Assembly (NCBI GenBank): GCA_002269645.1
Contig: NIVC01001697.1
Coordinates: 62,001-126,000, forward strand
Origin: Macrostomum lignano
Taxonomy: Eukaryota
Direction: 5' to 3'
DNA length: 64,000 nucleotides
The notes beneath the pieces were generated by a model. It saw only the letters and a program-made list of their open reading frames with translations. It was not told the origin of the DNA and searched no databases. The position numbers were made by a program, and so were the translations under genes. This document shows, in pieces, positions 39,444 to 44,208 of the stretch (position 1 is the stretch's first letter; each line of letters opens with the position of its first letter).

Positions 39444-42400
39444 TCAGAGCGCACTGTTGAAGCACTCAGCCGTCAGCTTCTCGCAGCTCGGAGCGGTCAG
39501 CAGCACCGCGGTCCAAAAGGTTGCCACGAACAGAGTCCACCACACTGGCAGCACAATCATCGCCAGCAGGCTGCACCCGTTACGCTGTCGTCCCGGGCTC
39601 GAACCGCGACGATTTCGCTGTCGCCGCCGCTGCCGGTGTCGCTGTTGCTGCTGCTGCAGCTGCTGCCGGTCTGCTGCCGTCAGCCTCGCTGTTGACGCCT
39701 GCGGCATGTGCGGCTGCGGCGGGAGCGGCTCCGCCAGGCCGAACAGGTCCAGGTTGTCCGAGGACTCCGTGATGGCCGTGCACTTTGAGGACCTCGGGTC
39801 CTTCTGGTAAATCATCGTCTGTGAAAGCATTGTCATTGAGAGCTTCTGCTTTGAGAAAGTCTAATCTGACACATTGTCCCGCCTGACACCAACCACGTCT
39901 GACACCAACCACATCTGACACCAACCACATCTGACACCAACCACATCTGACACCAACCACATCTGACACCAACCACATCTGACACTAAACCTTATCTGAC
40001 ACTAACCCTATCTGACACTAACCCCTCCTGACAGCTCACCCCATTGTAGCTGTGCTTGGCCGATCTCGGCAGCTGCAGCGGATCCTCAGCAGCCGCAACC
40101 TCATCAAGCAGCTCCTCGTCCCCGGGCTCGTTGGACTTCTTGGCCAGTGCGGCCATCAGGCAGCAGCAGATCACGAAGGTGCACATGGCGTACCAGATGT
40201 CCATGGCGTTCACGTAGTGACCAGCCGGCGACCAGTTGAAGATGAGGATGTGCAGCAGGGCCAGGTTGATGAACAGTCGGGTTGTGCGATCGAAAAAGTA
40301 CACAGTGGTGAGCGACAGCAGCACCATGATGAAGGACAAGCCGTACTGCCGGACAGCCGGCAGCATCTCATCCAAGCCGGTCCTGATGCAGATCCGGGTC
40401 CAGAACTGGAACTTGCGGCCTGCGACATTGCCAGGGGTAATCGTTTTTGACACTACGTTATTTACTACTCAATAAACTACTCAGTAAACTGCTCATTAAA
40501 CTACTCAATAAACTACTCAGTAAAATGCTCAATAAACTACTCAATAAAATACTTAATAAACTGCTCAATAAACTACTCAACAAACTACTCAACAAACTAC
40601 TCAATAAACTGCTCAATAAACTACTCCACATTCGTTTGGAGCATGTGAGCGTTAAAATTAGCCGGTAAGTTGTGCGTTCACAGCCATGATGGCCAACCCC
40701 CAAGGCACAGACAGTGTACATGCCTGCAGAATAAAAAATCAGGGCTATTTTATAGAGGCAGGGGGTGCTGTGTGCACCCTGTCTCACTTTAAGCGAAATT
40801 GTCACACAACCGGCGAGAGGCATTACTGCCCATTCCGCCGACTCCTCTGAGCAGGCACACACACTCAGGAGTGCACAGCGGCCCCAACTTTATTTATCTA
40901 CAGGCATGTACACTTCACTATGGCTTGGGGGTCGGTCCTCAAGGCCGTTTACTGCACGAGCAGAGCCAAGCCGAGATTCCAATTTAGCCCTAAATTAATG
41001 CGACTGCACTTGGAATCGAGCCTGGGCCGCTGGAACATCAGAGCGCCACCTTGTGTGAATGCATAACTGAGTGAAACGCATGACCTAGCTAGCTACCATT
41101 GTCGGTGAACGGCTTGGACAGCCGGTAGACGAACGAGTATCTCTGATCGTCCACCCGGGTGCAGTTGAGCTGGTGCCGCCTGCCCAGGCTCATGTGGATG
41201 GAGCGCTGGTTCTCCGGGTTTGCTAAAATCAAGCCGATAGTCCGAATGTATTGCTCAATTTAGTAATCATAAATTCTAAATTCAAAGCTTGTCAGAGCTC
41301 ACCTTCTTCGAAGATGAGCACGCAAAGGATGTCGCCAAATGGATGCTGCATTGCGGGACCATCGCATCGGATCCTGGCTCTGTGCCTGCGGGAGTGCCGG
41401 GCAGTGGGTGTCTGTCCGAGTGGGGTGTCTGTTCTGGTGGAGTGTCTGTCCGAGTGGAGTGTCTGTCCGAGTGGAGTCTCTGTCCGAGTGGGGTGTCTGT
41501 CCGAGTGGGGTGTCTGTCCGAGTGGGGTGTCTGTCCGAGTGGAGTGTCTGTCCGAGTGGAGTCTCTGTCCGAGTGGGGTGTCTGTCCGAGTGGGGTGTCT
41601 GTCCGAGTGGGGTGTCTGTCCGAGAGGGGTGTCTGTCCGAGTGGAGTGTCTGTCCGAGTGGGGTGTCTGTCCGAGTGGGGTGTCTGTCCGAGTGGGGTGT
41701 CTGTCCGAGTGGGGTATCTGTCCGAGTGGGGTGTCTGTCCGAGTGGAGTGTCTGTCCGAGAGGGGTCTGTCCGAGAGGGGTGTCTGTCCGAGTGGAGTGT
41801 CTGTCCGAGTGGGGTGTCTGTCCGAGTGGGGTGTCTGTCCGAGTGGGGTGTCTGTCCGAGTGGGGTGTCTGTCCGAGTGGGGTGTCTGTCCGAGTGGGGT
41901 GTCTGTCCGAGTGGAGTGTCTGTCCGAGTGGGGTGTCTGTCCGAGTGGGGTGTCTGTCCGAGTGGGGTGTCTGTCCGAGTGGAGTGTCTGTCCGAGTGGG
42001 GTGTCTGTCCGAGTGGGGTGTCTGTCCGAGTGGGGTGTCTGTCCGAGTGGGCTGTCTGTCCGAGTGGGGTGTTTGTCCGAGTGGGGTGTCTGTCCGAGTG
42101 GGGTAACTGTCCGAGTGGGGTGTCTGTCCGAGTGGGGTGTCTATCCGAGTGGGGTATCTGTTCTATTGAGTGTCTGTCCGAGTGGGGTGTCTGTCCGAGT
42201 GGGGTATCTGTTCTATTGAGTGTCTGTCCGAGTGGGGTGTCTGTCCGAGTGGGGTGTCTATCCGAGTGGGGTATCTGTTCTATTGAGTGTCTGTCCGAGT
42301 GGGGTGTCTGTCCTAGTGGGGTATCTGTCCTATTGAGTGTCTGTCCGAGTGGGTGCTACTCACCAAACCTTATACACCACAGCCCTTCTTGACGGGTCCA

Positions 42401-44208
42401 TTCCGGCCAGCTTGAGCGACAGGGAGCTCTGATCCTCGGTGACCGATTGAACATTCACGAAGACAAACTGGGGCGTCCAAAGCTTCTGGCGATTCAGCGG
42501 GATGGCCTCCATGCTGTCCACCAGAACGTCCAGGAATTTGTGGCGCCAGCGCAGATCCAACGTGAAGGCCAGATCCAGGTGCTGTGGAATTGTTTTAGCG
42601 AATCTCATTGAGAGTTTATGCGCTGCAGCATGAGACTAGATAACAGGAAAGCTCACGTGATCAGCCAGCTTCAGAATGCTGCCAATGCTTAGCGACACGT
42701 TCAGCACGCCACCACCGTCTCCAGGACCGATCTCGGGTACATCCATGTTCATGTACAGTGCCCTGATGTGCTCCTTGACTGACTCGGTGCTGGCGGCCCT
42801 GGGTAGATAGATAGATCGATAGATAGATAGATAGATAGATAGATAGATAGATAGATAGATAGATAGATAGATAGATAGATAGATAGATAGATAGATAGAT
42901 AGATAGATAGATAGATAGATAGATAGATAGATAGATAGATAGATAGATAGATAGATAGATAGATAGATAGATAGATAGATAGATAGATAGATAGAAAGAA
43001 AGATAGATAGATAGATAGGCAGGTAGATAGGCAGGTAGATAGGCAGGTAGATAGGCAGGTAGATAGGCGGGTAGATAGGCAGGTAGATAGGCAGGTAGAT
43101 AGGCAGGTAGATAGGCGGGTAGATAGGCAGGTAAAAAGCTGCAATAATTGGTTCCGTGTCTATTCGATAAGTGCCGGTAACGAACCAGCATCCAAGCGGA
43201 TTAACATGGCAGCTGCCTCAGCATGGCGCATGATGGATCACCAGGATCAGGTCCGGAGCTGCCAGGTCCTAGCGCTGGTAGTCAGAGTTGCCTGCCCCAC
43301 GCCTTCCCCCTTACAGCTGTCTGTGTTCACCAAGGACCCATCAGCAGCGCTCCCTGGCGGCGCTAGAAATTGTTGTGTTTGTCCAATAAGCAGAACCTTC
43401 TAGGAGCAGCAAGAATTAAAGTGATGAAGAGGGGGATCGGCCAGACCCGCATATTTTATACCCCATCCAGCCTCTCCTCGATGATGAGGCCGCAAAATTT
43501 ATCCGACCCCGGCACTTCCCGATTAGACATTCGCGCTAATTAAGCGCGGGAAAACTCGACAGGAACGAATCCTGGGACTGCGGAGGCTAAAAATTTTTGT
43601 TAGATTTGTCGGGGTCAACATAACTATGATTTGTTGTTTGTTTTGATTTCAACTAATACCTTGTGTCACCTTTTCTATCATCTATAAGACTCTCTGTACT
43701 CCTATCTGCATAGGTGTTCGCGTTTGATTATGTTACTGTCAAAATTTACACAGACAGACAGACAGACAGACAGACAGACAGACAGACAGACAGACAGACA
43801 GGAGACAGACAGACAGGAGACAGACAGACAGACAGACAGACAGACAGGCAGGCAGACAGACAGACAGGAGACAGACAGACAGGAGACAGACAGACAGGAG
43901 ACAGACAGACAGACAGACAGACAGACAGACAGGCAGACAGACAGACAGGAGACAGACAGACAGACAGACAGACAGACAGACAGACAGACAGACAGACAGA
44001 CAGACAGACAGACAGACAGACAGGAGACAGACAGACAGACAGACAGACAGACAGACAGACAGACAGACAGACAGACAGACAGACAGACAGGCAGGCAGAC
44101 ACACAGACAGACAGACAGGCAGGCAGACAGGTACAGAACTCACTTGGCGTAGTCAATCTGTCCGCAGGCCAGCTGCAGCAGAGCAGCAGTGAGCACTAAG
44201 AGACGCAT
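39444..44208 (-). CDS. Divergent Cys-loop (pentameric) ligand-gated ion channel subunit, ~476 aa
   Basis: Exons 44208-44144, 42798-42657, 42581-42364, 41385-41303, 41222-41097, 40419-40040, 39860-39444 (1431 nt), all GT-AG with consistent phases. Signal peptide MRLLVLTAALLQLACG; beta-2 LDLRW; loop A LWTPQFVFVN; C-x13-C loop CDGPAMQHPFGDILC; M1-M3 with YVNAMDIW; long M3-M4 loop; M4 MIVLPVWWTLFVATFW. The last acceptor was chosen because it restores M4. Confidence 0.85.
39884..40022. repeat. 16-bp minisatellite ctgacaccaaccacat, last intron of the channel gene
   Basis: Direct units filling intron 39861-40039. Confidence 0.9.
40466..40628. repeat. 12-bp minisatellite ctcaataaacta
   Basis: Direct units; source of the LLNK ORF. 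Confidence 0.9.
40768..41033 (-). mobile_element. Dispersed interspersed repeat, copy 2 (possibly tRNA-derived SINE), inside a channel intron
   Basis: Homologous to 11633-11897, with indels in the middle part. Confidence 0.6.
41405..42353. repeat. 17-bp minisatellite tctgtccgagtggggtg, channel intron 3
   Basis: Fills nearly all of intron 41386-42363. Confidence 0.95.
42804..43133. repeat. (GATA)n microsatellite followed by 12-bp ggcaggtagata units
   Basis: Starts a few bp from the acceptor of channel exon 2. Confidence 0.95.
43750..44130. repeat. (GACA)n microsatellite with insertions
   Basis: Ends ~13 bp from the exon-1 donor. Confidence 0.95.

Follow-up and report, generated by a model that had tools for sequence, protein, structure and literature searches.

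Does the flatworm Macrostomum lignano possess a Cys-loop channel that has abandoned most of the classical gating apparatus, and can such a protein still work as a channel? The question is raised by a locus on contig NIVC01001697.1 of NCBI GenBank assembly GCA_002269645.1. Positions 62,001 to 126,000 of its forward strand, 64,000 nucleotides in all, form the stretch analysed here as a whole; it is called the window, and coordinates are counted from its first letter. On the minus strand, at 39444-44208, a preliminary description had proposed a hidden, highly divergent Cys-loop channel, a member of the ligand-gated ion channels of pentameric type (pLGICs). According to the present analysis, there is little doubt that the window gene is real and belongs, as a divergent member, to the pLGIC superfamily. 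What it does is less certain, and we lean modestly toward an intact M. lignano gene for an orphan channel subunit, related to the anion branch, with non-classical gating. Most of the residues that couple ligand binding to the pore are altered in this protein, and the unusual motifs found in their place are themselves conserved between paralogues.

Seven exons, rebuilt from exon-sized entries of the open reading frame (ORF) list and separated by introns that are all of the GT..AG type, agree in number with the preliminary description and exactly reproduce its outer coordinates, 39444 and 44208. The spliced coding sequence is 1389 nt long, in frame, with a single terminal TGA, and its product has 462 aa from the ATG at 44208. 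An in-frame ATG 15 nt upstream (44223, MGTAG...), which is the start used by UniProt model P0002, extends the product to 467 aa; the length of 476 aa given earlier was not recovered from either start. Across the coding sequence, the G+C content is 0.79 at third codon positions (GC3) versus 0.43 at second positions (GC2), representing a clear coding signal. In the hydropathy profile, a signal-peptide-like N-terminus and 4 hydrophobic peaks can be seen, and the translation contains C149-x13-C163, in agreement with the signal peptide, C-x13-C loop and four transmembrane helices first described. From the N-terminus, the parts are a signal peptide, an N-terminal helix, a beta-sandwich ectodomain that carries the C-x13-C Pro-loop, the transmembrane segments M1-M3, an intracellular loop of ~110 residues, and M4. 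They are distributed over the exons as follows.

44144..44208, minus strand: exon 1, start of the coding sequence, with a signal-peptide-like MRLLVLTAALLQLACG; 100% identical to UniProt model P0002
42657..42798, minus strand: exon 2, N-terminal helix (STESVKEHIRALYMNMDVPE) and beta1, with the conserved N55-V-S glycosylation sequon; junctions match P0002
42364..42581, minus strand: exon 3, beta2 to beta6, including RW (W81) and the loop-A-like LWTPQFVFVN
41303..41385, minus strand: exon 4, Cys-loop C149-DGPAMQHPFGDIL-C163 (41322-41366) and the start of loop B (IFEE)
41097..41222, minus strand: exon 5, loop B without aromatics (ANPENQRS), then C190 and the beginning of the long loop-C segment
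40040..40419, minus strand: exon 6, uninterrupted, with the end of loop C (C222), a shortened pre-M1, M1-M3 and the start of the intracellular loop
40298-40366, minus strand: M1 (YGLS), in exon 6
40232-40288, minus strand: M2, RTTRLFINLALLHILIFNW, in exon 6
40208-40231, minus strand: short M2-M3 link containing P276, in exon 6
40130-40207, minus strand: M3 (AMDIW...), in exon 6
39444..39818, minus strand: exon 7, intracellular loop, non-conserved poly-Q/R helix, M4 and C-terminal tail
39741-39785, minus strand: intracellular motif KCTAITESSDNLDLF, in exon 7, conserved between paralogues
39495-39578, minus strand: M4, in exon 7
39444-39446, minus strand: TGA stop, in exon 7

Each of the six junctions is matched by a public model: those of exons 1/2 and 2/3 by P0002, which is 100% identical to exons 1-3; that of exons 6/7 by P0003 and P0013, which match exons 6-7, P0003 with one mismatch; and those of exons 3/4, 4/5 and 5/6 by P0006 and the paralogue models P0001/P0011. 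When the model and its paralogues were compared with the window by tblastn, every exon was recovered once, so that neither a tandem paralogue nor an alternative or mutually exclusive exon is present. Since M1, M2 and M3 lie in one continuous exon, the short M2/M2-M3 region and the missing PAR motif discussed below are properties of the genome and not a splicing choice. The same fact rules out that PAR or the full M2-M3 length could be regained by alternative splicing, and with it the outcome that would have spoken against the preliminary description, that other junctions restore PAR.

The list of ORFs contains only fragments of the gene, exon-sized pieces, as had been pointed out, and three public models of the locus (P0005, P0006 and P0013) are broken or frame-shifted. 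A pseudogene, or a chance assembly of ORF fragments, would account for both observations. However, the seven exons have canonical splice sites and no internal stop, the GC3 of 0.79 is that of coding sequence, and the protein matches its paralogue at E 1.9e-91 with conservation arranged in blocks. On the splice sites, the coding signal and the paralogue conservation this explanation was rejected, and it retains almost no credibility. P0005 and P0006 skip small exons and shift frame. Indels or skipped small exons set the broken models apart from the window, and we infer that faulty assembly or annotation lies behind them. P0005 also reads through a 5' leader at 44209-44330, minus strand (…FAQNSFTS[I/N]FVSLIPAILIAVFPIQNC-MGTAG). 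Just upstream, it diverges from the window, which there has an in-frame TAG after ...CCTGGTAG; this divergence could mark a splice or trans-splice acceptor, or an assembly difference.

How widely is this gene distributed? A profile built from the window protein and the homologue found first was run with HMMER over 1.84 billion representative proteins, and in this exhaustive scan only 10 proteins reached E <= 1e-3. The 6 strong matches are all UniProt entries of M. lignano. The other 4, with E from 9e-6 to 6e-4, look like ordinary pLGICs: a Tubulanus 'glycine receptor alpha-4-like' protein, an Ephemera hypothetical protein, and two unnamed Logan and IMG proteins. Among 5.8 billion clusters, two word-index searches found no close relative outside M. 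lignano. The first of these, with the full protein, returned one match and missed the identical P0002, the search apparently being swamped by low-complexity Q/R words; with the intracellular loop removed, M. lignano proteins alone were returned, and a query enlarged by canonical sequences yielded few usable matches. A scan of JGI metagenomes revealed no relative, and no study of the family, its UniProt accessions, or Macrostomum pLGICs was found in literature searches.

Within M. lignano, P0001, P0011 and P0012 represent paralogue A, which is 50% identical to the window protein and has a full-length model. P0004 (UniProt A0A1I8HIK5, 883 aa) is a composite of a ZP-domain membrane protein and the signal peptide plus ectodomain of a paralogue B, and is most likely two adjacent genes fused by annotation. 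In the databases searched, the family comprises at least 3 paralogue groups, with close relatives only in M. lignano. Two public fragments carry the automatic name 'Neur_chan_LBD/Neur_chan_memb domain-containing protein'. The gene was called hidden; this is correct in that no full-length model of the locus was found among the public M. lignano entries, but the locus is already present in UniProt as fragmented or mis-spliced models, and the paralogue in full length. The full-length model given here corrects the fragmented UniProt/WormBase ParaSite models of the channel locus.

By homology, the protein is a Cys-loop receptor, and a remotely related one. Used alone against the PDB, it matched GABA-A delta at 5e-5 over residues 46-304, and a three-sequence family profile matched GABA-A delta at 4e-7 and GlyR alpha2/alpha3 at 1e-4 to 6e-4. 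Down to E = 10, all PDB matches that include the transmembrane domain (TMD) belong to the anion branch (GABA-A delta/beta/pi, GlyR and GluCl); matches of the cation branch (AChBP and alpha7 chimeras) cover the ectodomain only, with E >= 0.018. Profile-profile alignment by hhalign with six anion-type pLGICs gave a probability of 97.9% and an E-value of 6e-13 for residues 33-301. The secondary structure predicted by AlphaFold2 (AF2) from a 12-sequence alignment follows the pLGIC order, with an N-terminal helix, beta strands, helices at 230-252, 256-274, 283-308 and 386-409, and M4 at 419-446. When this model was submitted to Foldseek, the PDB yielded 1034 matches with E<=1e-3, of which the top 50 listed are pLGICs without exception. 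As far as these comparisons can tell, the nearest solved relatives are anion-branch receptors, namely GABA-A delta, GlyR alpha and GluCl. The significant yet remote homology found with Pfam, the PDB profile and hhalign agrees with the highly divergent Cys-loop receptor first proposed, and in Pfam, the PDB searches, the protein scan and hhalign alike it clusters with no characterised subunit.

What has changed in this receptor, and where? The seven most conserved residues of the superfamily, listed in Table 1 of Jaiteh et al., are all situated at the interface of the extracellular domain (ECD) and the TMD (PMC4795631). In the window protein 2 are kept, 4 are lost or shifted, and 1, the beta9 aromatic (W/F/Y), has no agreed column. 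The Pro-loop proline, the only residue conserved in 100% (PMC4795631), is kept as P157; it is invariant in all 3 paralogue groups and is aligned to the canonical proline by MAFFT. It belongs to HPFGD, between the Cys-loop pair C149 and C163, two cysteines with 13 residues between them; the pair and its loop are conserved in paralogues A and B. The aromatic that precedes this proline, F or Y in 96% of receptors (PMC4795631), is lost, being H156 in the window protein, also His in paralogue B, and Tyr in paralogue A. The Asp present at P+2 in 93% (PMC4795631) is shifted by one position: P+2 is G159 (Ser/Gly in the paralogues), and an invariant Asp, D160, occupies P+3. The arginine found before M1 in 94% (PMC4795631) is also lost. 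In its place, L227-D228-E229 stands opposite L-R-R of GABA-A delta in the HMMER alignment; MAFFT places a gap of 4-5 residues there, and paralogue A reads LDDM. Aromatics do occur within 196-204 (RYSFVYRL), but the alignments differ on the column of the beta9 residue.

The Pro-loop P+2 Asp is the salt-bridge partner of the pre-M1 Arg, and it can be seen that both members of the pair are affected. The preliminary description had read HPFGD in place of [FY]PxD, and its list of losses was borne out in the translation; it had missed the loss of the pre-M1 Arg and the one-position shift of the Cys-loop Asp.

The binding site is altered as well. At the position of loop B, F167-E-E-A-N-P stands opposite ESYGY / ESFKY without any aromatic residue, so the SWxY motif is absent as first stated. 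No vicinal Cys-Cys is present in the ectodomain as read from the translation, which agrees with the earlier view that this is not a nicotinic alpha subunit. Loop C is not simply missing, however: the conserved C190 and C222, each aligned to a loop-C Cys of GlyR/GluCl type in 2 of 3 alignments, flank a conserved segment (VYRLSKP...GRKFxFWTRIC) of 31 residues, compared to ~10-11 between the canonical cysteines.

In the TMD, losses and retentions are found side by side. The M1 14' position is proline in 77% and Gly in 5% (PMC4795631); here Y237-G238-L239-S240 lies opposite Y-x-P-S with L239 at the Pro position, and paralogue A has YCLS, so that YGLS replaces YxPS as originally read. The proline of the M2-M3 loop, present in 88% (PMC4795631), is kept as P276, aligned to the canonical proline in both MAFFT alignments. 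The motif at the start of M3, Y[VI]KA[IM]D[IV]W, is matched by Y280-VNAMDIW-287, the sequence of GluCl/GABA/Gly type that had been noticed before, and M4 aligns with the canonical pattern P..F....YW. The M2/M2-M3 region is indeed short, but by 6-8 residues (6 in hhalign, 8 in the ungapped alignments) and not by the ~5 estimated earlier.

The register of M2 depends on the method. Canonical receptors have Arg/Lys at 0' in 79% and Leu at 9' in 75% (PMC4795631). An ungapped M1-M2 register is given by phmmer, hmmsearch and two MAFFT alignments, with R259 at -2', F261 at 0', N263 at 2', L267 at 6', H268 at 7', L270 at 9' and W274 at 13', after which 8 residues are deleted. In hhalign, two linker residues are dropped, which places R259 at 0', F261 at 2', A265 at 6', H268 at 9' and F272 at 13', after which 6 residues are deleted. 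Each register thus keeps one of the two canonical features, the 0' basic residue or the 9' Leu, and loses the other. PAR and the -1' Glu are absent in both, T257-T258-R259 or R259-L260-F261 occupying the PAR site, and the statement that the FDRTTR linker has neither was therefore correct for either register. R259 of FDRTTR may be an ordinary 0' Arg.

The same ambiguity bears on the His that had been placed near the 9' gate, which is H268 at 9' in hhalign, but at 7' in HMMER and MAFFT, with Leu270 at 9'. If the hhalign register applied, protons or zinc, both brought up in the preliminary description, might act on a ring of five histidines formed by H268. Drosophila Hodor is an invertebrate anion-branch pLGIC of the pH-/zinc-gated kind. 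Such a gate would fit R259 at 0' together with H268 at 9', the invariance of H268 between paralogues, and the replacement of the Cys-loop aromatic by H156, and a pH-sensitive pLGIC of the anion branch, SsCl, is described in invertebrates (PMC13065796). However, phmmer, hmmsearch and both MAFFT alignments assign H268 to 7', which normally does not line the pore, and H156 is Tyr in paralogue A. A His-ring gate is considered improbable.

Are these changes maintained by selection? Comparison with paralogue A indicates that identity is highest in the M1-M2 linker plus M2 (82%), followed by the Cys-loop (67%), the ectodomain (58%) and M1-M3 overall (57%). It falls to 38% in the intracellular loop, 33% in M4 plus tail, and 12% in the 8-residue M2-M3 link. 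The unusual motifs themselves are conserved in the paralogues as FDR[TS]TR, NLALLHIL, Y[GC]LS, [HY]P[FL][GS]D and FEEA. Two further elements are conserved but unmatched in canonical pLGICs, namely the intracellular KCTxIxExSDxLDLF, an acidic motif (39741-39785), and, in the extracellular tail after M4 (39447-39494), C450-x6-C457; trafficking, anchoring or an extra disulfide are guesses as to their roles. The poly-Q/R helix of the intracellular loop is not conserved in the paralogue. Taken as a whole, the pattern of identity suggests that a working protein, and above all its M2, is under purifying selection.

This pattern also bears on the simplest explanation, that the gene encodes an ordinary, fast-evolving chloride channel of Gly/GABA/Glu type whose odd motifs reflect neutral drift or alignment noise. 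The best matches (GABA-A delta, GlyR alpha and GluCl), the M3 sequence YVNAMDIW, the Arg in the 0' region and the possible loop-C Cys pair all agree with it. However, because the odd motifs are conserved between 50%-identical paralogues, they are not the product of drift. Additionally, the protein has none of the loop-B aromatics, PAR, the M1 Pro or the pre-M1 Arg, and the best match to a canonical pLGIC among the 1.84 billion proteins has an E-value of only 9e-6. An ordinary channel is regarded as very improbable.

How, then, might the protein work? Under the favoured interpretation, it would still assemble as a pentamer, probably with itself or with its paralogues, and would still use M2, since no segment is better conserved between paralogues than M2 with its linker. 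The ECD-TMD coupling cluster would have been rebuilt, with His at the Cys-loop F/Y position, the Cys-loop Asp shifted by one, an acidic pre-M1, Leu in M1 and a short M2/M2-M3. A classical transmitter, whether an amino acid or an amine, would not be expected to gate it along the canonical pathway. As the loop-B aromatic is lost and loop C is replaced, such a transmitter is probably not bound in the canonical aromatic pocket; as salt-bridge pair, M1 kink and M2-M3 link have all changed at once, the canonical transmission from binding site to pore would be impossible. If the protein conducts, anions are more likely to permeate than cations, because the -1' Glu is absent and an Arg is present at 0' or -2', following the charge-filter rule as cited in PMC4795631. 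That the protein is still a channel, with non-classical gating, has on this evidence about an even chance or slightly below.

Several points weigh against this interpretation. The loss of coupling residues could equally mean that channel function is gone. Residues predicted to face the pore are hydrophobic or bulky in both registers (R/N/L/L/W or T/F/A/H/F), and the exposed hydrophobic stretch of M2 comprises only ~15 residues. Selection is judged from the paralogue proteins of one species, M. lignano, and the public models that match the junctions may be gene predictions, not transcripts. The membership itself is remote. When Pfam was consulted, as the preliminary description had suggested, Neur_chan_LBD was found at E 3e-5 and 24.0 bits, below its gathering cut-off of 26 (paralogue A passes at 29.7 bits), and Neur_chan_memb gave no match in the window protein. 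The AF2 confidence is low, with a mean predicted local distance difference test score (pLDDT) of 53.7 for 12 sequences and 35.5 with a two-sequence alignment. The Foldseek TM-scores are 0.24-0.35, and since the AF2 alignment included canonical pLGICs, there is some circularity in the fold match.

Some of these points would be expected of a non-conducting descendant of the pLGICs. It might be a subunit that is silent or auxiliary, an accessory subunit having been among the first suggestions, or else a protein of membrane-receptor or adhesion type in which the fold persists but ions are no longer gated. The loss or shift of 4 of the 7 most conserved coupling residues, the deletion of 6-8 residues from upper M2/M2-M3 and the pore-facing side chains are all consistent with it, and the loop-C insert, the intracellular motif and the C-terminal Cys pair could serve contacts between proteins. 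In contrast, M2 and its linker are the best conserved part (82%), as expected if the pore helix matters, and the prolines of the Pro-loop and of M2-M3 have been kept along with the M3 and M4 motifs. We also know of no full-length pLGIC homologue with a proven non-channel role, which counts against this alternative. It is held to be unlikely, though it deserves serious weight.

A bolder interpretation is that a Macrostomum-specific lineage with a rebuilt coupling interface works by a mechanism not seen in characterised members. The pre-M1 charge would be reversed, the Asp shifted and the M1 kink absent, with a 31-residue loop C stapled by a disulfide and a short M2/M2-M3. Such a protein might be a self-capped or constitutively set channel controlled at the His ring by pH or metal, or a receptor of pLGIC fold that signals without classical agonist gating. 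This interpretation is rather doubtful.

Comparison with known systems places these features in context. The best matches in both sequence and fold are vertebrate GABA-A delta/beta and GlyR alpha (PDB 7qn5_E, 9y7p_A and others). The window protein shares with them the domain order, the C-x13-C loop with its proline, W81, WxP (W104/P106), the M2-M3 proline, the M3 motif [YV]xA[MI]D[IV]W and the M4 pattern P..[FW]....[FY]W. However, identity is only ~15-20%. The window protein lacks [FY]PxD, the loop-B aromatics, PAR, the M1 Pro and the pre-M1 Arg; its M2/M2-M3 is 6-8 residues shorter, its loop C ~20 residues longer, and its M3-M4 loop is long and partly low-complexity. Similarity to GluCl (C. 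elegans GluCl alpha, PDB 3rhw) extends over M1-M3, with E 0.026 for the family profile, and FDRT at the end of M1 resembles the GluCl FDRT. The loop-C Cys pair of GluCl and GlyR-like receptors has its possible equivalent in C190 and C222, though as C-x31-C compared to ~C-x10-11-C; glutamate-binding signatures are absent, and the TMD is unrecognised by Neur_chan_memb. From nicotinic alpha subunits the protein differs by the missing vicinal loop-C Cys-Cys.

Orphan pLGICs have been described from lophotrochozoans and other invertebrates, including Alpo4 of Alvinella pompejana (PMC10338036), Drosophila secCl/CG7589 (PMC6522505) and SsCl (PMC13065796). Like these, the window protein is lineage-specific and unassigned, with an atypical binding site or pore; Alpo4, unlike it, is nicotinic acetylcholine-like and belongs to the cation branch. 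None of the three was among the close relatives in the 1.84-billion-protein scan and the PDB searches. A precedent for a one-position shift of the acidic Pro-loop residue exists in a nematode clade of Cys-less pLGICs (Dirofilaria Q70GM3), where the Pro-loop reads YPFE (PMC4795631). In the nematode clade, however, the shift is N-terminal and the receptors are Cys-less, whereas in the window protein it is C-terminal and the Cys pair is present. The combination of remodelled coupling, short M2-M3 and long Cys-flanked loop C was not found described in the literature searched. The superfamily is well known and orphan pLGICs are common in invertebrates; what is unusual is the simultaneous, conserved remodelling of the coupling interface, together with the short M2-M3 and the long Cys-flanked loop C.

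From bacteria to humans, no part of the pLGICs is better conserved than the coupling residues. A family that occurs in nature under constraint, with 4 of 7 changed and the M2-M3 link shortened, represents a test of how indispensable this pathway is. M. lignano allows RNA interference and transgenesis, which makes the channel family experimentally tractable; for now it is a curiosity of one flatworm lineage, partly public already.

The introns of the gene had been described as filled with minisatellites. This holds for 4 of 6, with 58% of intron bases in tandem arrays, but the 75-bp and 80-bp introns are free of repeats. No exon overlaps a tandem array. The arrays within the gene, for which no strand is assigned, are the following.

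43750..44130: intron 1, (ACAG)n array of ~97 copies
42804-43114: intron 1, second array, (TAGA)n and derivatives
41406..42353: intron 3, 97% filled by a 17-bp minisatellite of 56 copies
40464..40626: intron 5, 12-bp minisatellite of 13.6 copies
39883..40023: intron 6, 16-bp minisatellite of 8.8 copies

As 37% of the whole window consists of tandem arrays, repeat-filled introns are general to the locus and not peculiar to the channel gene. Outside the gene, arrays are found at 3667-7829, 9118-10575 and 44804-45872, examples being a 4.2-kb array of a 16-bp unit in 260 copies and an array of 51 copies of a 21-bp unit directly upstream of the 5' end of the channel gene. Long spurious ORFs arise from such arrays, on the plus strand within intron 3 and elsewhere at 44731-45783 (minus strand) and 21471-22526 (plus strand), the last with meaningless Pfam matches to Baculo_PEP_C and collagen.

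Rfam and tRNA scans of the window gave no matches, and several other genes or gene parts were observed. At 12141-13496 on the minus strand, a single 451-aa ORF encodes a G-protein-coupled receptor of the rhodopsin family (Pfam 7tm_1, E 2.6e-43), in a gene that appears intronless. A 402-aa ORF at 49229-50437, minus strand, contains a glycosyltransferase DXD sugar-binding region (Gly_transf_sug, E 1.7e-9). A Ty3/gypsy-type long terminal repeat retrotransposon occupies 50592-55031 on the plus strand, with ORFs for gag (weak), reverse transcriptase, RNase H and an integrase zinc-binding domain; its pol is split over the overlapping ORFs 51388-52611 and 52530-53849, indicating that it is frame-shifted or broken at that point. 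Finally, a 200-aa ORF at 59921-60523, minus strand, matches glycosyl hydrolase family 38 (alpha-mannosidase) in that family's C-terminal beta-sandwich and is probably one exon of a larger gene.

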